A DNA stretch of 60,813 nucleotides, the filler included, from Trichosphaerium sp. ATCC 40318 (taxonomy: Eukaryota; Protista; Tubulinea), in the NCBI GenBank assembly GCA_038496445.1. It is 3 parts of 3 records of this genome, joined end to end, with 100 filler letters (N's around TTAATTAATTAA, not from the genome) between each part and the next. Parts side by side here need not be neighbours in the genome. Positions count along the whole stretch, not along the records: positions 47,000 to 60,813 come from JALMLS010000462.1; 2 more parts are not named here. The stretch is one strand, 5' to 3'. This document shows, piece by piece, positions 47,000 through 60,813 of the stretch. The notes beneath the pieces were generated by a model. It did not search any database. It was given only the letters and a program-made list of their open reading frames with translations, and was not told the origin of the DNA. Position 1 is the first letter of the stretch. Every line of letters begins with the position of its first letter. Both the position numbers and the translations under genes were made by a program.

Positions 47000-47645
47000 T
47001 ATGAAGAGTAAGCTTGCTAAGAGAAGAGAGCTACATTGCATATGTATAAAAAATGCAATAAGCGAAAGCGAGCTTCTGCAGCGTAAAAGAAAGCAAGATG
47101 ATGAAACGAAAAAAAAAAAAAATCAAGAAAAGTTTAGAAACGCGAGAAAGGAAGGAAGTTCGACTTGTATGTATAGCTTACTCTCGTAAGAACGATTTTT
47201 AATGTACATAGAATTGTAAATAAGAATGAAAAATAAACCTGTTATAAATAACCACTATAAACATTGCTAGGTAGTAGAGACGAGCAAAACAATTTTGAAA
47301 GTTTTGTCCACGTTTTTGTACCAAAAAGGAAAATTAAAATAAAACTTTGTACTCATCTTACTGCATGTACTGATTCGATCGCATGATACTTCATAAACAT
47401 GTATTCTATGTGCTTTAGCAAGTACTACGCAATATTGTAGTATTACTGACCTTGTTACAATGCTCCGTCACATTCTCCACCATTTTTTTTCATTAATTCC
47501 TTTAGTCCTGGACATACGCTTGCGAAACCGTTTACCCAATGAATCCTTGGTTTATTCCACTATTAGTTACATGGCGTAGGATATCACTGGTAAGTTTCAC
47601 TGTGATTGTTAGTTGTCAACAGCTCCGTAATGGTCTAATTTGAGC

Positions 47646-47991
47646 TAACGCCCTTCCGTTATGAATACAAGCAATATTCATATTCATTGTCCCGTAAGCC
47701 ATATTCATTAATATTCATTCATGAATATTCATGGGCGTTTGGTGTGTCAGGATGTTGAGGAGCTTTTGGTTTGTAGCCTAGCGATGTTCCAAATGGATAG
47801 ATTCAACAAGTTGCATTTGAAAACCGAATCGGAATAGTCACCAGAACAGTAAAACCCACAAATCCAGTTGCGCAATTTTCGACCGTTTACTGTGTGCATG
47901 AATAATGAATGAATTTTTTTAGTCGTGAGTATTTGTGAATGTAGGCTGTATTTGAATATTCAAATTATTCATTCATAACGGAAGGGCGTTA
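47646..47991. mobile_element. 346-bp MITE, hAT-type (21-bp perfect TIR, 8-bp TSD)
   Basis: TIR TAACGCCCTTCCGTTATGAAT; TSD ATTTGAGC / ATTTAAGC; subterminal AATATTCA repeats; the terminus fits the hAT YARNG consensus. Confidence 0.88.
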
Positions 47992-48325
47992 ATTTAAGCT
48001 TAAGTAAACCGGTTATGGCAATTCGTAACCGGTTCGGTTTTGGCTATGGTGTAAATGAAAGTTATTGGCTTCATTGTAAGCCACTGGGGACGCTTTTTTT
48101 TCATCCTGACTATTGTACTTTAAAAAACAAAGTTCTGCAAGTTGAGTGAAAGTGAAACAAAATATTTTATTGAGTATACTTTTGCTACAGTTTGCGCTTG
48201 TCCACCGCTGTCAGCACCATATTACACTGAATCATATTAGTTAACAAGTCGAAGTTAAGTGGCTTTCAGTACCACGGTTAACCGTTTTTGTTACCGAAAA
48301 AGTAAGACCCTCTGGTAAAAATGTC

Positions 48326-49087
48326 TCATCTTTTAACATGTCCTTTAACAAAAAAACATCTACTCCTTATTTGACCATCTTCGTACCAACATATTTCCTC
48401 TCCATCTTTTTGTGCAAAGTAATTTTCTTTAGTCATGACATAAGTGCATTGTCTCTTTAATTGTCCATTCCTAAACCATGTCTTTTCTACTCCACTCTTT
48501 TTGTTTTTAACGTAACAACACTTGCTAGACATTTGACCATTATCATGCCAATATATTACATCACCTTCTTGTTCTTCTGTACACTTGTCGCTATAACAAA
48601 TACTACTTCTTAAGACACCACTCACATACCAACTTTTCTCTTCTCCAACTTTTATATCATTTGAGTAAAAACACGTGGATTCTATCCTTCCATTAATGAA
48701 CCAACATTTCGCTTCTCCATTTTTCTTGTTATTGACATAATAACATTCCATGGCTATTTGATTCTTACTCTCTGCAGTCCACACTTTTTCTTCTCCTTCA
48801 ATGAAAGAAGGTTGAACAACTAATTGATATCCATAGTATTTCCTCCATTTACCATGTTTCTCAAACACGCTGTTGAATCTTGTAGTAAGAGCGGTGTGTT
48901 TGGATAAAACAGGCCATTTTATGAATACTTCTGCATCTAAATCGATGATATCGAGCTGTAGCTCCAAAGGGAGCTTTAATAGAGCGTATTCATTCTTCTC
49001 TGAGGTATTAATCTATGTGGTTGTCACAGGTTAGTTTTCATGTGGTTTTATAGGCTTTACGCGAACTACCTTTCGTTTTGACGCCAT
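48326..49087 (-). CDS. F-box-like + MORN_2 repeat protein, paralogue of 2845-3549
   Basis: Exon 1 MASKRK, intron 49069-49013 (GT..ACTAAC..AG), then INTSEKNEYALLKLPLELQLDIIDLDAEVFIKWPVLSK and W[FY]xxGQ repeats. Confidence 0.85.
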
Positions 49088-49625
49088 TGCAGTCTTTGAG
49101 CCAAAAATACTGTAACGTGATATTGGACAGTCAAACGGATTCTACAACAACGTGATTGTGTACATAAGCTACTGTAGGAGCATTTGTGTCCTAGCGTAGT
49201 TCAACAAGCATGACCACAATACCAAGAATGTGTCCACTAAACAATGCTCTAATAAGATAACCCAGGCGATATGGGTGCTACTTGTTCTTATGTGTCAAGT
49301 GTGACCCAGTTGTTAAATGCTATGATTGTGACAAGCTACATAAACAACAACACTTATGGCGATAAATGTAATAGCTTGAAACGCTAGTATTGTAACAAGA
49401 CCTTATTAAGTGCCTTGTGTAGTACTGGTTGTGGACACTGGGAAATCTGTACACCGTGCCTTAAAAAGTTGTATCCGTGTTTTTAAAACTGGCTTGTGCG
49501 ATTACCACACAGACGGCGAATAAAACTAAAACAGTAAATAACTCATTTTGGCATGAATAGATTGTTTTGTTACCCATCATTGACAATTTGTGATTTGGGA
49601 AAAGGTATATATTATTTATTACCAT

Positions 49626-51682
49626 TTACAAGAATACTTTGCGTGTCTGTTTAATTGGACCTCTGCAAATAGGACAAGAGTTGTATACTTTAGAATTTGG
49701 ATCGCTTGTATTGTGGTTAATATACTTATTCAAACATTCCTCACATAGAGCCATATGGCAACAAGGTTCAATCAAAATACAAGCGGTTTTGTCATAGCAT
49801 ATTTTACACGTGAGTTGTTGTGAATCCTAAAAATAGCCTTAACAACAAAACCGAAAAAAAATCTGTACCTTCGCAGAGTCGTTCCTTGTTGATCCCATAG
49901 AGGTATCGACTTGATTATCAGATTCCTTTACATTGATATCTTCGTTTTTATGGTCTGGTACAACGTCATTGTTGGTCTTAGAGTCAGAGTTATCACTAAA
50001 TTACATGTTAAATCCATGGTGGTCAAAAATAAAAAAGTTTTTACTCGGATAGAACTTCAACAGCTTCACCCTTATCGTCAAAATCTTCTTCTGTATTTAT
50101 ATTCTTTGGATAGAATGGGTGGCTTTTTGGGTCTTTGTTTTGTGCTTCAGTTTCTGATTTATATTCTCTACACCAACATCAGCAAGCTTGACGTATCGTA
50201 CACAGCGGTATGTTGAGCTGTTCGTACTTTAGTTCGGTTCCAAGTGCTATAAGGTACTTGAAAAGATCCTTCAGTTGTTGTTTAAACGTGCAAAGAAGTA
50301 CTCTATAAGTTATAAAACCAAAGATAGCAAGAGCTATCAGCACAATATAACCACCGCCTATTACATAAATCGTTAACATAAAAATAAGAAAAAAATAAGA
50401 AATTAATGATTACCAATAAACCACTTGATAGATAGCAAAGGTAAGCTTAAATACCATATTTTGGCTACGAATGGGTATTTCTAATATATGTCGTAAATAT
50501 CACAATAATAAAAAAACGTGAGGAGTCGCACAGCACTGAGCATTTCGACTTTTCCAAAAACCAAGTTATTCAGAAACCAAATATATCGCAGAGTATAAAT
50601 GACATTATTGATAAGCACTACAACCTTATTCTGTTCTGGATTAGCTGAAAAGCATTTCATTAGGGCGATTAGCCTAAAAATATTATTACTACATTTATAC
50701 AAATGTACGTACAATTCACTAAGAACCCAAGGAATGACTGTGATAATGTTAGGAGAATTGAACTTTTTTTTGCATGTAGCTTACCGGCAGAAAAAGGATG
50801 ATGACGGAGTCCCATAAACAAAATAAACACAGGTATGTCACCGCACAAGTTAGGAAGTATATTGAAGAGAGTATACCGATCAGAGCGATAGTAAATATGA
50901 TTACACTTAGAGCAACAAAAGTATCAATAATTGTAATCGTCAGAAAACTGAAATTGTGATTCCCACTTACTCGATAAACAAATCCGCCTAAGATTAAATT
51001 GACGTAACTATACCATAGAAGCTACATGATGTTAGTTAGGGTTTTAAGGTTCTCCAAAAAAAAATGGTACCGTCGTAGTACTGTCTGCATCTTCTTTTTG
51101 ATTCTCATACCCAAAATAGTAATAAAAATAGAAGCTAGTCACTTGGAAGCAATAATAGAATAATATTGTGCCGTAAACCATCCTGATATATTTTTCTGGA
51201 AATAACACTTCAATAAAACTCCAAAAAAAAACACGTGCGTGCTCTCAAAAAAGCAAAAAAAAAAAAAAAAAACAAAGAAATTTTATGTTTACCTATACCA
51301 ACCAGTAGCGCCACCACAGCATTAAATTTCTCTTTAGAGTTTATCAACAGCCTAAATAACGTGAATTTAATTCAACTATAAAATAAAATTTGACACGTGG
51401 TCGTGTATACCATTGAATTACCGTACAACAAACTACAAAGGGGATAAAAGTGGTGTAACTAAGAAATAACCATTCACTTGTGTATATAGGCCCATCAGAC
51501 GTTATATAAGGTGCGTATATGAGTCCAAAGCGTAACAACAGGACTAATAGAGGAAATAATGATACCAGTGATCTACCCCAAGGTGTAACGCGATCAAAGA
51601 AGTCATACCATTCCTTGATTAGTGGTGGAGTATTGGGACCGTTTGGAGGTAAACTTTCAAGTTGACTTGCTTCGGTTGTCAT
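49626..51682 (-). CDS. Multi-pass membrane protein with C-terminal C3HC4 RING finger (putative E3 ligase)
   Basis: Several hydrophobic exons; terminal CKICYD...PCCHMALCEEC...CPICRGPI. Confidence 0.88.
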
Positions 51683-52035
51683 TAAGAAGTTGTTTGTTTA
51701 CTGTGTTTGCTTAACATGTTCGTTCCTTGAGGAACTGTTTTGCTAAGATAGACCAACTTGCACTTAGCTAACTAGTATCCATGTTATGTGAGTTGCCATG
51801 TAATGACAGCCACTAGTGACCGACCATTCTAACCTGCACGACATCTTATCATGCTGGTTTTCTCCCCGCACACTCAATTTCCGAGGAATTATTGTAAGAA
51901 CGTGTTATTTTGTATTTATTGTCGCACTGGAAGCTAATGGGAATAAAAAAACATTGAAACTTGATCAAAAACCAGGATTGAAAAGTCTAAAAAGCTAGTG
52001 TGAGCTCTAAAAACAACAACGTAGAAATAAAAGCA

Positions 52036-52984
52036 CTAATATTCAACTAGGCTGTTTTTTATTTTGTTTTGTTGATGTTCCCATTTTTGTACTTGTTCTT
52101 CGAGTTCCTTCTGTGACATCAAATTAAGTTTATTCCATGCTATTGTGTATCCCATCTCAGCACCTGCTTCAAAGCCCCAGCCTGTACTTAAATATAAATC
52201 CACACCGGTATACGGATATATATAATATCGACCACCAAAACCAACTACAAAGTCTGACTCAAGCCTTGCGGAAATGAACATTCCTATTTTTTTTCTTTGT
52301 TAGTAGTGTATCAATAAACGTCATCAAACTTACCATCTAAATCTTCGGGCTTACATATAATACCAATTCCCAGTTGTAGTTCTGCAATCATTGTGAATCC
52401 TACACCTAAACATGGGTGAGCACAAGCGAGAAAAGTACAAAATAACATACCAATAGAAGGTGTAAAATAACATCCTGCTTGCTTATTGCTTACTGCAGTT
52501 GATGCTATTCCTGAACCATGAAAGTAAACGCCTCCTGTTAAACCAGTAGATACAACAATAGAAGCTTTATCTAGAAAACCAGGCAAGCTATGTCTAAAAT
52601 AAAATTAGACTAACCTCTTCATCTGGTTTCTGTTCTTACCTGATAACATTTGCAATTTTATTTACCATCATTGCTTGAACAATACAAGCTTTTCCACGCA
52701 TGTGTGAGTAATCAATGCGCTTATACATTGCTGTTAGCATACTTGTAAGATTATCTATATACCAATAGTGAGCAATCTAAAATAGATAACAGAGCATCGC
52801 AAACACAAAGTTTTCACTTCGAAATTCTCTGCTTTAACTATTGCGTACCAAGCCTGTGCCCGCAAACTGTGAAGGTCGAGTGGCCTGTCTCTCCTTTTGC
52901 ATCGATATTTAGTGTGCCTCCCACAACTGGGATAAAACAGTGCATAACAGCGACATAGCAAAGCGCAAATACGAAAATCTTCAT
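52036..52984 (-). CDS. Secreted glycine-rich beta-strand protein with short C-terminal coiled coil (copy 1)
   Basis: Signal peptide MKIFVFALCYVAVMHCFIPVVGG; spliced VVSTGLTGGVYFHGSG...PEDLDGMFISARLESDFVVGFGGRYYIYPYTGVDLYLSTGWGFEAGAEMGYT. Confidence 0.75.
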
Positions 52985-53757
52985 TTCAATGTAGCTGAGT
53001 AATACTGGTTAGTATTCATTATTGGTACTTACGACGCAATTACAAATCCATACCTGTACGTCTCGAGTGTATTGTATTGTATTAAAAAGGGTAAAGGTAG
53101 TATAACGTCAAGTCCATTCTCCGTAAGTCGTTGACAGCTCGTACATATGTCACGTTGGCGATAGGCACCGTTTGCGTGTACTAGCTTGAATGCAAATTCC
53201 GACAACACAACTGTTTCCTTTTTAGGAGAAAAAGTCAATTAGAACATTAAAGTCTATCGAAATGAGTGTTGTAGCAATGCATAAGATCAAAATAACCCAG
53301 TAAAGGTTGACGTTGTATGATGTGTTGATTTTCTAGCCTTACTCAAGATAGACTATATCATATTCTGAACTTGCTTAAAAAGGTATTACCAGACAACATC
53401 ACGAACTCCGAAATTTGTATACCAACCGCAAACAACTTGCATGAGGCAGGTGTGATTTTAAGTCAGTACAAGTGTTTCAAACCACGGTGCATATTCTATA
53501 AAAAACGCACTACTCATCGTGATTGCAGCGTACAAGCACGCCTTTGAGATGTTCCTACTATATTTAGCAATAATACAATAGAATTGTAGGCCATCGCGTC
53601 AGTTTAGTTTACGGAGGACTTTAGTATTAGGTTGACAAAAGCTGCACAGTAGCACACAACATACTGCGATTGTCTTATGGACATTTGACAGCATCAAAAG
53701 AGTAGTTTTATTTTAAAAGTTAGAGAGGAAGTAGCTTGACAACAGTTTTTCGTTTGA

Positions 53758-56004
53758 TTATTTGGTGTGGGTTTGCTTCTCGAGGAACCTTTGCTGTTTC
53801 TCAGTAAGCGTTAAATTGTTGATAGTGCCTAGAGGTACAAGATGCTTTAGCATTTCAAATTTCATACTGTCGTAGTCACAATTGAGAGCTGCATTAAAGC
53901 ATCTTGACCAATTACGCATAATCGGTTCCCATATCCTGTGAAGCGTTGCAAGCCTATTAGAAGAATCTCTGAAAACCCAGTTGTTATAAGCCTTGTCTAT
54001 GTTGTGCTTTGTTGTTGCACTTGAATCCATGTATGCTATAACAGCAACAAAAGAACACAAGTCGTCTTGTATGGTGTAGACATGACTTGATTGAATGGTT
54101 ACTTCTGCAGTGTACAAATGTGGTGTAAACTTCCATCCCTCACGGATTTCCATCTTAACATCATCTGAAATGTGACAGGCGGTTCCCCAACTGCTTAAAA
54201 CATAGCCGGAACTGTTCATCATGATAGCTGTGTCTGTAATATTCCTACAAGCGTAATATTAGCGCTCAATACAGCAACAACTTTAACAAAGTACCTGTGG
54301 ATTATTCCCTTTTTATGCACACTACAAAGAGTGTCTATCAACTCTATGGATTGTCCAAAGTCGAACCCTGTTTCAGGCGGTTTAGTTAGATATTCTATTG
54401 TTATATCCAAACCATCTTGTTGCTTCTACAAGAAAAAATAAGATGTCAATTGTGTATAACTTTAAGTATGTGCAAACGTACCAAATTGGTAACACCAGCG
54501 ATACCATCCAAGGTACGAAGTATATTTCTTTCGTCAGAACAATTTGATTTGCCATCTGTTGGTTCTTTGTAGGCAATAAGATTCGGCTCTGTACTAGTGC
54601 CGAGTTGAACCTTGTAAACTGTTGAACTATACCCGACACCCAGTACTTCTAAAGGAGTATAGTTGTTACCCTGAATTGTAACTACTTTTGGCGTATAGCC
54701 AAGATCCTTTGGTGTACTGCTAAGCAAAGAGAATAAATGCTTTAATCCCTTCTCCGCAGCATGAGTAGCATGAAGAAGGTTATAGATCCTTGAGAGAAAG
54801 CCTAACGGTTCACCCTTAGGTTTTTGAGCATCTGATGTTAAGGTGCTAGCCTTTAACAGATCTAATACGTTGGAAGCGTAATATGTGTATACAGGTTCTG
54901 GAAAGTTGTTCTCAATTCCCATTTCGAAGAACCGAATTTTCTTCAAATTTTGTAGAATACCAAACGCCTTTGTACGCTGAGGTTGTGCTTGCATTATCTC
55001 GTGCATTTCTCTCCAAACTCTACCTTCTTCATCTGCTGTGAAGCCATTTTCTAAACAAACCAGTTAGTAAATCATAACAAGAACTTGTCGTGTTCACGTA
55101 CTCTCATCTTCAAGGAGCTTCCAACATAGCACTTGGTGGTACTTTGTAACATGACCTTTTGCTCCAGGGAGAGTACCCTTAGGCAGATGCGGAAATACTT
55201 GAATATCAGAGCTTACTCTTTGCGGTGTTACTAAAACACTGAGAGTGCTACTAATGTTATGGCAAGAATCAGTCTTTGCAGTAGAGAGTGATCGCTGGAT
55301 GTCAAGCATTGTTTTTGAAAAATCTTTCTCGTCTTTTTGAAGATTTGAGACCAGCATTAATCCTTAAGATGATGATAAGTCTATCACGTGCTTAAATTGT
55401 ACTTTTTTGAACATACCGCCTACGTTCACTTGTTCAAAGCGGTTATCTTGCTTTTTCTTGTCTTTCATTTCCTTTAAGAACATATGAGCGGCATCCTTTA
55501 GGTCTTTATAGTATAAGCATTAGCAGAAAAATATAAGAAAAGAACAACCGTACCTATTTTTACTTTTTGACCTAAAGACAACTGTCTAAACTGACGTTGT
55601 AGTTCTATATACACTTTACTGGTGTCATTTTTATCTGCTCTAGCTCGTTTGCTTCTTTGATCACGTTGAATTGTTGTTAAATTGCCATCTTGGTTTGTGT
55701 CTCTTTCTTCTTTTTCGTCTCTTGGACGCTTGCGAGCTTCACGTTCTTTCCGTTCAACACCAATAAAAGTGACAACATGGTCTGCTAACAATGCAAGTTT
55801 ATCACCATCAAAATCATTAGCTGTGAGTAGGTAAGCAAACTAATATCCAAGCTATATTTCAGGCATACCTGCATCTATTATTAATTAAACCAATGCTCTC
55901 TCAGCAATAGGCTCATCACCAGTAGGGATTTTGTTAAGCTTGGCTATAATTTCGAGATTCTTTATTGATAAACACTTGATGAGCTCTTTTTGGCACTTGT
56001 CCAT
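53758..56004 (-). CDS. HeH + REase-like + pseudokinase (CR-effector/FunK1-like); in-frame TAA in first exon
   Basis: IMQAQPQRTKAFGILQN, LGVGYSSTVY, IAYKE and ERNIL are present. The catalytic loop is HRNITDTA and the DFG position is SWG. TAA at 55885-55887. Confidence 0.75.
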
Positions 56005-57520
56005 TTGCTGCACAAACCGTTAGCAAAACAAGAAATACAAATAAACTGACAAATCAAAGTAAAGGTTCAGACAATCTTGTATTGCAAAGTTCACGTTGGT
56101 AATAGCAAAAGGCCTACACTATCATCTCCAATACAGAAAAGCTAACGTACAATTTGAAGAGTTCTAGTGCAATATGGTAGTAGTTTGGCGGAGTGATAAC
56201 CTTGCTTGTAGGTTTATCTATGGACGAGCTGTTGTGAAGCTGTTACAGTGGTAAATAATAGGACTCAAGTATGCGTTTGGTAGTCAAAAACACTGCTGTT
56301 TCTTGGAATTAATACGGAGCTTTGCTCTAGTGTACCTCAACCCTAGAAGCCAGTACAAAGTTTACCAGTGACACCCAAATTAGGTACCAAAAACTGCATC
56401 TATAAGTGCGTCACGGAGTTCTAAATTAGGTTCGTGTGCCCATCTTAATCTTAAATGAGCGTATTTTCCCACAAGATGTATTGGCCTTTTTTAAGTAAGG
56501 TCAGAACATGAACTAAAGTGCCATCTTGTTAATGCTTATGTCGAACTTAAACATTCTGAAAGAATACTTTTTTGTGGAAAACTATGTAGTTTGTTGTTTG
56601 TGCTTGAGTTCAAAAAGCAAGCGGCATGATACACATCAACTTCACGCTCTCAGCATCTTTACCTGCGGAACCAGTTTGTGGTATATGGGTCCTATTTAAG
56701 CATCACAGCCAAAAGCAGTGCCCATTTAAGAACTCCGAGGTACCGGGTTCCAGTCGAGATTGTTTAGGTATAGGAATAGCTTGATACATTCCGCTGTTAC
56801 TTATCAACATTAACTTTTTTCGATAATACTCGAGCCACTTTCGATTGTGTCACAAAAAATACAACATAACTTGTAATACGTGTGTAAACGCAAGATAGAG
56901 CGTCATGACTCATATTCTGGCCTTACTTGAAAAAGGATTACTAGTAAATCATCACGCACTACTAACCGAGCTAGTTTGTACGTGAAAATCATCTTGGGAT
57001 GGTGTGTTGTTAACGTAGGCTTCACATAAAAAAATTATTCCTATTTAGGTATCGTAGTCACATCAAAAATGGAGATCTTGAGTGCAAACGTATAGAACAT
57101 GAATGGGTAATGTAGAAAAAACCAATTTAAGAAACTTAGCCATCAGAAGTCATCCAAAGTTTAAAAAAGCGCGCAAACCAGCTCTGGTTACTATTAGTGA
57201 GTCTACACAAAGAATATAAGTACTTCAACAGGTACTTTGTAGCTCTCAATCAGAGTAGTTTTATTTTGCCTCTTTGACCACTTGGGTACGCTCAAACAAC
57301 TTTTTCTGGTGCCGTGCGTGTATTATAGTGCGAAACAGCAAAGTAGAAAATGAAAACGTTCTAGCTCGTTTCATATTCACTTATTTTGTTCGCATAGCCT
57401 TTAAAACGCGTGGTAATCCACGAAAAGCTATTCTAATTTGCCGAGCAAGAAAACAGTTCCTCCTTCAAACAGCCAGCGGTTTTGTTTCACAAGCCCACTG
57501 ACACTTTACCGCAGCACAAT

Positions 57521-60013
57521 ATGACAACGGACTTATTAAAAAAGAGTCAATTCCATAAATTCAACATCAAAGAACTTACGGCCATTGCAACTCAATGCAA
57601 TGTTAGTATCACAAAAGGTTTGCGAAAGACAGCACTTATAGATTTGGTATTTAACGCTTGTGGAAATCAGCAAGTTCGTTCAAAGACATTTAACACCTGC
57701 TAAGTGGTTGATGTAGGACACTGTGAGAGCAGCGTTGACAAAGAAACAACTGCAAAAGTTCTCCATCAACGAGCTCTCAGCCATGGCAACACAGTGTAAT
57801 ATCACTGTTGTAACCAAAGGTTTGCGTAAGGTAGCGATCATCAATATGGTGTTTGATGCTTGTAACAAAGAGACCACTGGTACTCAATAACAGCAAAATA
57901 CACTTTATTGATTTGGTTTTATTATAGCAGAAAGTATAGACACAGTGCCCCAAGCTGCTCCAAAAGAAGACCAATCAGAAGAAGAAAACATGTCTAGTAA
58001 GAACGACTTCTTTGATCTTATTATTGCCGGCGTGAAAAAAGACATGAGGGAGGAAGTAATAAACGAAGTAAGAGAAGAAAATAGAGAGGCGTTAAACTGT
58101 CTTAAAAGAAGACTGCGTCGTTCTGAAGAAGAAACTGACTATGAATACAAACGCCACAGAGCAATGCAAAACAAAAACAACCGACTGTACTTAGAATTAA
58201 TATATTCATTTAGAGATGCATCCTTGAGCCAGAGGACGATGCAAGGTATCTCCGTTTTCTTTCCAATGAGGCGTTTTTTTTCTAATTTTTTTCGTAAGGG
58301 TATCCTGCCATTGCACATTCCATTGCTGAGAAAACAGAATATCAACACTCATTTTGTCATCCTGAAACGTCTAAGCAATACATTGAATCATGTCAAACAT
58401 TTCAATCGATGATGTTAAAGCTCAAATCATGTTCGCTTGACAAATACACTGCTGACTTCGCATCATTTTTATCACGTGATGATATTTGTCCAAATATTCG
58501 TGCAGACGTCGTTCCAGATGCTAAATCATTTCTTCCAAATCGTTTTCGAATCATACCACAACTCAAAACGATTCGTGAAAGAGATTGTACATTGTATCAT
58601 CACGTGTTAACTTGGGACATATTAGAAGGCAACGGTATGTACTTGGCTTGTGCTTGACTTTATCTTGGTTTTATTTGTTGCTTATTTTGTGTTATTAGCT
58701 TCATTCACCGCACATGATAAAGGCATGATATGGAGTGACATGAACAGAATCCTTAAAGCCCAACCTCGCCGCGAATTTGTGTATGGAATACTTCAAAATT
58801 ATCAGAAAATTCAATTTTTCAAGATTACCAAAGCAGGCGTTCTTGTATCCGAAACTACGCATCACGCAACATATGAAATGGATTTACTTGATTCAAATGC
58901 TCCAGGTGAAGGTCTAAAGCATTTGGTAAGTTTGCTACATTACAAGCTTGGCGATCTTGGATATATTTCAAAAGTATTTACAATCAATGGGTTTGAGTAT
59001 GTACCACGAAAAGCACTTGGTATAGGTGCTCATGGAACAGTGTACATGATGTACTTATCCAAAAGTGATCCTCCAAAGTATGTTGCGTTCAAGGATTACA
59101 TAGAAAATATGGATGATCCAATAAAGCCAAAAATGGATCGAGAAATGCGAATATTAGATCTTCTCAAAAATGTTCCTGGTGTTCCAAAAGTTGTACGTTT
59201 ATCAACATGTCACACTTGATCAACGCTTCTGTTTTTTGAAATATTTTTAATACTTCTCAAGTCTTAATGCCTTGACAGGTTGGCGTAGATCCAGGTGTAG
59301 GATTTGCAATGAATTGTATTTGTCAAAGCTACAGAGACGCTCCGTTTGATCATGTGTTGCTAGCAAAACAAATAATTGGAACTCTTGAGCTTGTTCATAG
59401 TAAAGGTGTTGTTCACAGGTAACTACTTACTTGCCTATTAATTCTACAAACTACTTATTATTCTTCCTCTAGAGATATTTCCGCTTCAAATATCATGCTG
59501 CTACCACCAGCTTACAAAGAAGACATAACAAGATACATGCTGATTGATTGGGGAGCCTCCACGACAGATACTACGCCAATAGGTATAAGTGGTGGTCTCA
59601 AATTCGCTCCACAATTGTACGAAGAGTGGATTGACGAATATCCAAAAAAGAAACATGCCTATACACCAAAGGATGACTTGTACTCATTCATTTTCGTGAT
59701 GGCATACTTTTATATAACAAAGAATGACAGGGATAGAGTTGATACAGCATACCAGCATTTCGTAGAGGCCCATTTTAAAGCAGATGAGCTTTTAAAAAGA
59801 GCACGTGCTAAGATACTTACAGAAGCGTGGGCGTCAGTGCTACCTCTCAATTGGAGACGTTGTTTGCAACGAGCAGATGCCATAGACTACAAAGGTGTTT
59901 TAAATGAAATCCTCAATTGTATTTCGAGTACCACAGATCAATGTTGTACAAAATGTAGAAATTTTCCTTCTTTATGTGCATGCAATGGTGTATATAACCT
60001 AAGCAGAGAATAA
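57521..60013 (+). CDS. 2x HeH (Rho_N/SAP-like) + coiled coil + REase-like + Ser/Thr kinase (CR-effector/FunK1-like)
   Basis: KFNIKELTAIATQCNVSITKGLRKTALIDLV occurs twice. Then ILKAQPRREFVYGILQN, LGIGAHGTVY, VAFKD, EMRIL, spliced HRDISASNIM, LIDWG and YTPKDDLYSF. Confidence 0.88.
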
Positions 60014-60387
60014 AAACTATTGTAAATCAGATTTTCTAGTCCACTGTGCAAGATACAAACACCGGGTTGTTCTGCCTAAAAGTGAAGTACAAATAAAGCT
60101 TCTACGCTCCAGATGCTTATTAGAACCAAAACAGGTGTTGTAGTGTAGATAGTTGTTTGCAACATTATACAAGAAAGATACATAAATCAATTTCTGTAGT
60201 GTTTCAGCTGAATTACTACCTGAATCGCAATAACCTTGTAAGTCTTCAACAATATTGTCACTTTTTACCGTGCAATTGATGTAGTGATATAAAACAAATC
60301 AAGGCCCTGAAAGACTACTCAAAACAAACAATTTTTTAGACGGCTTAAAGCGGGCAAATACATTAAAACAATACGCCAAGCTTGCGC

Positions 60388-60813
60388 TCACTTAAAAGGC
60401 CATATGGATCTGCGCTTTTCTTCTTCCTTTTTCTTTGCTTGTTCCTCTTTCCTTGCTTCTTCTTCTTCTTTCCTTGCTTCTTCTTCATATTCCTTTAGTA
60501 TGCTCTCCTTATACAGTCTATTCTTTCTTTTTACTTCGTTATGTTCTTTTTTTGATGTCAATTTTAGTTTCTTCCATGCTATCGTGTATCCCACCTCACT
60601 GCCGAGTTCAAAACCCAGCCCTGTACTTAAATATAACTCTACACCGGTATATGGATATATATAATATCGACCACCAAAACCAACTGCAAAGTTCGATTCA
60701 AGCCTTGCAGACATAAACATTCCTATTTTTTTCTTCGTTAGTGTATCAATAAGTGTCATCAAACTTACCTTCTAAATCTTTAGCTTTACATATAATACCG
60801 ATTCCTAGTTGTA
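60388..60813 (-). CDS. Glycine-rich beta-strand protein, copy 2 (3' part only), with longer E/K-rich tail
   Basis: Closely similar in DNA to ~52130-52378, including the intron; tail EEEARKEEEEARKEEQAKKKEEEKRR. Confidence 0.8.

Follow-up and report, generated by a model that had tools for sequence, protein, structure and literature searches.

Two neighboring genes that point away from each other, one encoding a kinase with a complete catalytic site and the other a kinase without one, raise the question of whether they work as a pair or simply adjoin by descent. The genes in question lie in the window, a stretch of 60,813 nucleotides (nt) from the genome of the tubulinean protist Trichosphaerium sp. 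ATCC 40318 (GenBank assembly GCA_038496445.1), of which positions 47000-60813 (13.8 kb, record JALMLS010000462.1) were analyzed. In the original prediction, made from the sequence alone, they were described as a Crinkler-like kinase/pseudokinase pair bracketed by duplicated beta-strand proteins, possibly a co-regulated sensor-executor module. Judged by its sequence, this is a real locus, a variant of the CR (Crinkler-RHS) restriction endonuclease (REase)+kinase architecture in which a selected pseudokinase sits beside its active sister; immune pairing of the two genes is an analogy, weakened by the geometry of the flanks, the absence of a nuclease motif, and a stop codon (Table 1).

The two genes start at ATG codons on opposite strands, at positions 56004 (minus copy) and 57521 (plus copy), and the 1,516 nt between them match the predicted gap of about 1.5 kb; head-to-head linkage, one property of paired sensor-executor loci, is thus present. 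Both contain six introns, and introns 4, 5, and 6 coincide in place and phase between the copies; the last of these interrupts the Arg codon of HR, so that the previously noted shared intron after HR is real. Across exons 5, 6, and 7, the encoded proteins are 41%, 50%, and 34% identical, with shuffle z-scores of 38, 7, and 25, respectively (exon-pair range 34–50% identity, z from 7 to 38). The common layout consists of a helical header, a coil that is homologous in the two copies (shuffle z 5.3), an REase fold, and a kinase, and the predicted REase-like stretch (QPxRxxxxGILQN) followed by a kinase was found in both. The claim that both headers are of the HeH type held in part: the plus copy has two repeats with weak matches to Rho_N (E-values of 2e-4 and 4e-3, below the Pfam cut-off), which were obtained for this copy only, and the minus copy has a single, degenerate repeat, the one that holds the stop.

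All searches were run exon by exon, which lowers their sensitivity, chiefly for the beta-rich protein and for the intron-split REase region. A profile built from both exon-5 sequences and run against 1.84 billion proteins retrieved 15 relatives, with E-values from 1e-8 (best) to 1e-3; in this representative library, none of the hits came from the source organism itself. Of the eight that were scanned, all matched a kinase family and seven matched DUF6826; their named sources are protist transcriptomes, one of which is from the amoeba Difflugia compressa, and metagenomes. A profile of these relatives, in turn, recovered exons 5, 6, and 7 of both paralogues (E-value of 3e-8 for exon 7 of the minus copy). 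The predicted structure of exon 5 (predicted local distance difference test, pLDDT, 89) aligns along its length with clusters of DUF6826 and Pkinase_fungal at TM scores of 0.59–0.60; within the model, residues 1-84 match a type I restriction HSDR_N cluster, and residues 91-164 match kinase N-lobes (Z 6–7). Both genes therefore belong to the protist and fungal DUF6826+kinase, that is, CR REase+kinase, family, as had been proposed.

Members of the family are widespread in free-living protists and in fungi. Like both copies, the relatives that combine DUF6826 (PF20713) with Pkinase or Pkinase_fungal (PF17667) contain a helical header, an REase fold (with QPxR..IQFF), and a kinase (with HRD and DW[GS]). 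As far as the review in PMC5289972 relates the work of Zhang et al. 2016, REase+kinase is an architecture of the CR effector class; it accounts for about one sixth of the CR C-termini, and toxicity is attributed to the REase (PMC5289972). Two hallmarks of the class, an REase fold directly ahead of the kinase and a variable N-terminal header, are present at our locus. By contrast, neither gene belongs with the oomycete CRN proteins of the CRN8 type: their header is ubiquitin-like, with LXLFLAK, whereas the one found here is HeH-like, and no LXLFLAK or DWL motifs were found in exons 1–3. Word searches with exons 5 and 7 of the plus copy and the last exon of the beta-rich gene, which reach 0.55–1.75 times the exon length and are silent on full-length kin, produced no matches. 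Scans of metagenome, viral, and prokaryote contigs yielded no close relatives of the locus genes, a weak absence. In two JGI contigs (L002 and L003), a distant DUF6826+kinase relative, from a 90% identity cluster with 14 members, lies in a unit of six open reading frames, the order of which suggests a tandem repeat or a mobile block.

The predicted contrast between the two kinases was borne out by the gene models. The plus copy retains the Gly loop, VAFK, the alphaC Glu, HRD, Asn, and DWG, and so appears to possess a working kinase site. The minus copy retains the Gly loop, IAYK, and the alphaC Glu (its beta3 Lys is retained in the pairwise register, although the multiple alignment shifts its position) and carries HRN, Ala in place of Asn, and SWG; with the fold kept and the catalytic Asp and the Mg-binding Asn and Asp lost, it qualifies as a pseudokinase. 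No other pseudokinase was seen among the 24 fetched relatives that span the loop, 14 of which come from a single 90% cluster: all 24 keep HRD and Asn, and 23 extend to DW[GS]. That the minus copy has lost exactly the catalytic set is an overstatement, however. Those residues are gone, but its branch is also longer than that of the plus copy (1.29 versus 0.71, or 1.8-fold, in exon 5; 2.47 versus 0.53, or 4.7-fold, in exon 7), and it keeps fewer of the family-conserved columns (25 versus 30 of 34, and 11 versus 14 of 30).

The nuclease site, which the original prediction did not mention, shows a different pattern: a PD-(D/E)xK motif appears unrecognizable in both copies. In 12 relatives, (D/E)xK is positioned such that its Lys is 25–34 residues before the QPxR proline, with PD 22–26 residues further ahead where the sequence extends far enough. 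Within the same range, the plus copy has no Lys at all, and the minus copy has C-W-K, without an acidic residue (D-E-K lies just outside the range). Exon 4 of neither copy aligns to the PD-(D/E)xK motif of the relatives (hhalign probability <1%). Given that neither copy shows the motif present in the relatives, there is no evident nuclease executor at this locus, and the nuclease is quite probably dead in both, with the proviso that the register is not certain.

How long has the minus copy lacked catalysis? The paralogues are old: the proportion of differences between them is 0.68 at synonymous sites (pS), near saturation, and 0.43 at nonsynonymous sites (pN), values somewhat biased by the protein-guided alignment, and identity is 0.58–0.75 at the second codon position versus 0.31–0.41 at the third. 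They group as sisters among 14 and 8 relatives with support of 97/96 and 99/96, in a small sample of relatives that were retrieved with the paralogues' own profile. In the minus copy, exon 7 has accumulated about 2.5 changes per site without a single stop or frameshift, and the gene as a whole (645 codons) contains one stop, no frameshift, and six intact introns. In simulated neutral decay, at most one stop combined with three changed catalytic codons arose with a joint probability of at most 6e-5, so this is not an ordinary, long-dead pseudogene; as remarked earlier, the long exons are open apart from the stop. Because synonymous sites are saturated and the frame is otherwise open, catalysis was lost long before the stop appeared, while the frame was still selected, under relaxed or altered constraint. 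The minus copy was thus a selected pseudokinase that is now probably broken in this assembly: purifying selection is evident for the past, and its present status is doubtful given the stop, which is either recent or an error.

The in-frame TAA is where it had been reported, in codon 40 of exon 1, ahead of all six introns; in all readings, it was treated as X only. The stretch has a GC content of about 37%, GT-AG introns of 43–86 nt, mostly with GTA donors, and a standard genetic code, a combination that suggests a microbial eukaryote. Decoding of TAA as a sense codon is ruled out: TAA, TAG, and TGA each terminate genes here, and there is one in-frame TAA in 1,754 codons. Alternative splicing around the stop, one of the explanations previously offered, finds no good bypass among the candidate donors, as frame-keeping introns would need GTTTAT or GTGATG donors and lengths of 99–153 nt, unlike the introns observed. 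The downstream Met expected near 55484 was located as the next one in frame, with its codon at 55483; a start there would yield about 500 residues, without the header. In this assembly, then, the minus product is most likely a young null and, at best, would be N-terminally shortened.

The genes on either side bear on the question of pairing. A copy of a Gly-rich, beta-rich gene is present on each side of the kinases, as predicted, but both copies are on the minus strand and form a young direct repeat, not a mirror-symmetric frame: copy 1 lies behind the minus kinase in a head-to-tail arrangement, and copy 2 and the plus kinase face each other tail to tail. The copies are 8.44 kb apart, with 84% DNA identity over 275 nt, dS of about 0.4, dN of about 0.1, and an intron identical at 43 of 50 positions, so their duplication is much younger than the split of the kinases. 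On the left, the similarity breaks off within the coding tail, and on the right, it runs to the piece edge; the charged helical tails of the two copies differ. Either the beta-rich gene was duplicated across the kinase pair, or a beta-minus-plus unit continues rightward. Apart from the kinases, all genes of the piece (the beta-rich copies, a gene with MORN repeats, and a RING-finger gene, see below) occupy the minus strand; the plus kinase alone is inverted, so a single inverted copy suffices for the head-to-head appearance. The local tail-to-head gaps measure 353 and 773 nt, and the divergent gap has about twice the length of the second; being equivalent to about two ordinary upstream regions, it gives no hint of a compact shared promoter. 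A hidden gene in the gap was considered and rejected, as there is no coding signal.

Among these observations, the best, although tentative, reading, one we hold at slightly less than even confidence, is that the two kinase genes are neighbors through an old inverted duplication. An ancestral CR-family gene (DUF6826 REase and kinase), its nuclease site probably already decayed, would have been duplicated locally long ago, with one copy inverted. The plus copy may then be a Ser/Thr kinase carried to DNA or RNA by its two HeH-like repeats and the dead nuclease fold, whereas the minus copy would have lost phosphotransfer, been retained by selection as a folded non-catalytic binding protein (a scaffold or a decoy), and recently acquired one early stop. 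The kinase genes would adjoin by descent, uncoupled, and the beta-rich genes would have been duplicated later and independently. Several points weigh against this scenario: in a mobile, fast-changing family, old paralogues that have stayed next to each other in divergent orientation speak mildly for coupling; the homologous coil could pair the two copies; MAFFT gives a PD..QxK register in exon 4 of the plus copy, leaving the nuclease register uncertain; and pairwise rates are unable to date the catalytic losses one by one. A copy that was selected even after kinase catalysis was gone, beside an active sister, suggests that CR REase+kinase proteins can act by binding alone.

A fair rival, possible if rather unlikely, is that the minus product serves, or served before the stop arose, as a dedicated regulator, damping or tuning its sister by pairing with it via the coil or the kinase domain, as a natural dominant-negative or antidote. 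Long selection on a catalytically dead sister that remained adjacent fits this possibility, as do the retained Gly loop, Lys, and Glu, with which the minus copy may still bind nucleotide. There are precedents among REase+kinase CR proteins of Phytophthora: CRN8 of P. infestans dimerizes, and its kinase-dead mutant suppresses the wild type (PMC3426532); the nearly identical PsCRN63 and PsCRN115 form dimers and have opposing effects, PsCRN115 being proposed to dampen by pairing (PMC5289972). The minus copy can be regarded as a natural counterpart to the dead form of CRN8, which was engineered. However, PsCRN63 and PsCRN115 differ by 4 residues, whereas the present pair differs by about 60% and its large exons are only 34–41% identical; our pair, furthermore, lacks the LFLAK/DWL header and signal peptide. 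With an early stop in the minus copy and an intact plus copy, a real stop would mean that the plus copy by itself is tolerated by the cell. The CR family also holds many pseudogenes (PMC3426532, PMC5289972).

Head-to-head sensor/helper pairs of NLR (nucleotide-binding leucine-rich repeat) receptors from plants, tandem kinase-pseudokinase proteins, and MLKL-RIPK3 involve divergent genes or the combination of one active and one dead kinase. By analogy, one can envisage a naturally evolved, long-conserved pair derived from CR parts: in a free-living protist, the live kinase would carry out a defense or self/non-self response, its dead partner would sense or restrain, the arrangement would recur genome-wide, and the stop would be an error of assembly or a knock-out specific to this strain; we regard this as improbable. 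Were the pairing to recur, it would point to a counterpart, in a protist, of paired immune receptors; as one locus with one of its members broken, it is a modest observation on the family. No further family copies were found in positions 47000-52000, so that the 13.8-kb piece holds two, and the three loci of one distant relative cluster each have a single kinase, without a second copy.

The module as originally proposed, a co-regulated immune or self/non-self sensor-executor unit with the flanking beta-rich proteins as part of its output, is not supported and is unlikely. The divergent orientation and the active/dead contrast recall the plant pairs and kinase-pseudokinase proteins, a beta-rich gene is found on either side, and a 51-nt motif stands upstream of the minus kinase and again upstream of beta copy 1. 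Yet the beta-rich genes form no mirror frame, exon-wise domain scans found no sensor or death domain, the nuclease site is unrecognizable in both copies, the gap is twice an ordinary upstream region, the minus copy has its early stop, and the three loci of the related protein lack a partner. Unlike the plant NLR pairs and MLKL-RIPK3, our pair has no NB-ARC, leucine-rich repeats, integrated decoy, or four-helix killer domain, and the analogy involves no homology beyond the kinase fold.

Similarly doubtful is a selfish toxin-antidote locus of the Spok type, in which the plus copy would have a variant yet active nuclease checked by its own kinase, and the minus copy would be a disarmed relic whose kinase catalysis became dispensable after the nuclease died. 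The Podospora Spok proteins, as the proteins here, combine a coiled region, a PD-(D/E)xK nuclease fold, and a kinase in one chain; killing depends on the nuclease domain and resistance on the kinase, and an allele whose kinase is dead is toxic if nothing else in it is broken (PMC6660238). A SPOK2_N cluster is among the Atlas look-alikes (0.83), a weak lead to sequence relation, and the PD..QxK register in exon 4 of the plus copy would suit a live nuclease. That register, however, works only if about 17 residues are inserted between the Lys and the helix that follows, the long openness of a doubly dead copy is left unexplained, and exon 5 lacks the Spok cysteine cluster ahead of the kinase. Spok is also a single gene, not a divergent pair, and requires an active nuclease; the combination of active nuclease and active kinase with a cysteine cluster between them was not found. 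Finally, the one stop and longer branch of the minus copy might point to an ordinary pseudogene whose catalytic residues disappeared through neutral decay; this reading is largely refuted by the otherwise intact frame and introns and by the simulation of a single decay phase, and is very improbable.

Table 1 Features of the divergent kinase locus and its flanks (positions in the window)
Feature	Position	Strand	Remarks
Gly-rich, beta-rich gene, copy 1	52036..52984	-	~245 aa; hydrophobic N-terminus; first intron boundaries tentative
Paralogous pseudokinase gene (HRN, Asn>Ala, SWG)	53758..56004	-	7 exons, 645 codons
Introns of the minus gene	55868-55821, 55553-55504, 55416-55363, 55101-55051, 54481-54426, 54294-54245	-	
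Single in-frame TAA	55885..55887	-	codon 40, exon 1, within header repeat
Divergent intergenic region	56005..57520	.	1,516 nt; no coding signal, RNA family, or long inverted symmetry
CR-type REase+kinase gene	57521..60013	+	7 exons, 714 aa, without internal stop
Introns of the plus gene	57674-57716, 57880-57927, 58246-58298, 58635-58698, 59193-59278, 59419-59472	+	
Two HeH/Rho_N-like header repeats	57521..57878	+	exons 1 and 2; 58% mutual identity
REase-fold region	58299..58990	+	end of exon 4 plus first half of exon 5; (D/E)xK absent at the offset seen in relatives
Kinase domain	58991..60013	+	full catalytic set: Gly loop, VAFK, alphaC Glu, HRD, Asn, DWG
Gly-rich, beta-rich gene, copy 2	60388..60813	-	last two exons, cut by piece edge; direct repeat of copy 1

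The beta-rich protein produced only chance-level matches in exon-wise searches of Pfam, NCBIfam, PADLOC, and PDB sequences and by tblastn against plasmids; its Atlas look-alikes are short unnamed bacterial proteins with low recognition, and its single-sequence fold has a pLDDT of 34. Its hydrophobic N-terminus is followed by PSIG, DLxG, and alternating Gly strands, features that may call to mind EipA/DUF1134, SYLF-type barrels, and some RHS C-terminal domains, a likeness that did not show in the exon-wise scans. The 51-nt motif, upstream of the two genes as read on the minus strand, is a non-coding direct repeat (53358-53407 and 56910-56960, 78% identical) and could be a cis element common to both or the relic of a small repeat; it scores 40 bits compared with a maximum of 32.8 in 300 shuffles, the regions having been picked post hoc.

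Further to the left, a spliced gene on the minus strand (about 51682-49626) encodes a RING finger of the C3HC4_3 type (E-value of 1e-10) at its C-terminus, together with several hydrophobic segments, and is likely to specify a membrane E3 ligase. The next gene on this strand (48326-49010) contains MORN_2 repeats (E-value of 7e-19) and, judged by eye, an F-box-like leader; viral relatives were sought in the contig scan, and none were found. An open frame rich in Lys and Arg (47000-47189) probably represents the terminal part of a gene that the left edge truncates. Between these lies an element resembling a miniature inverted-repeat transposable element (47646-47991), with perfect 21-nt inverted ends, short ATTCAT repeats within both ends, and an outer TA that might be a target duplication.

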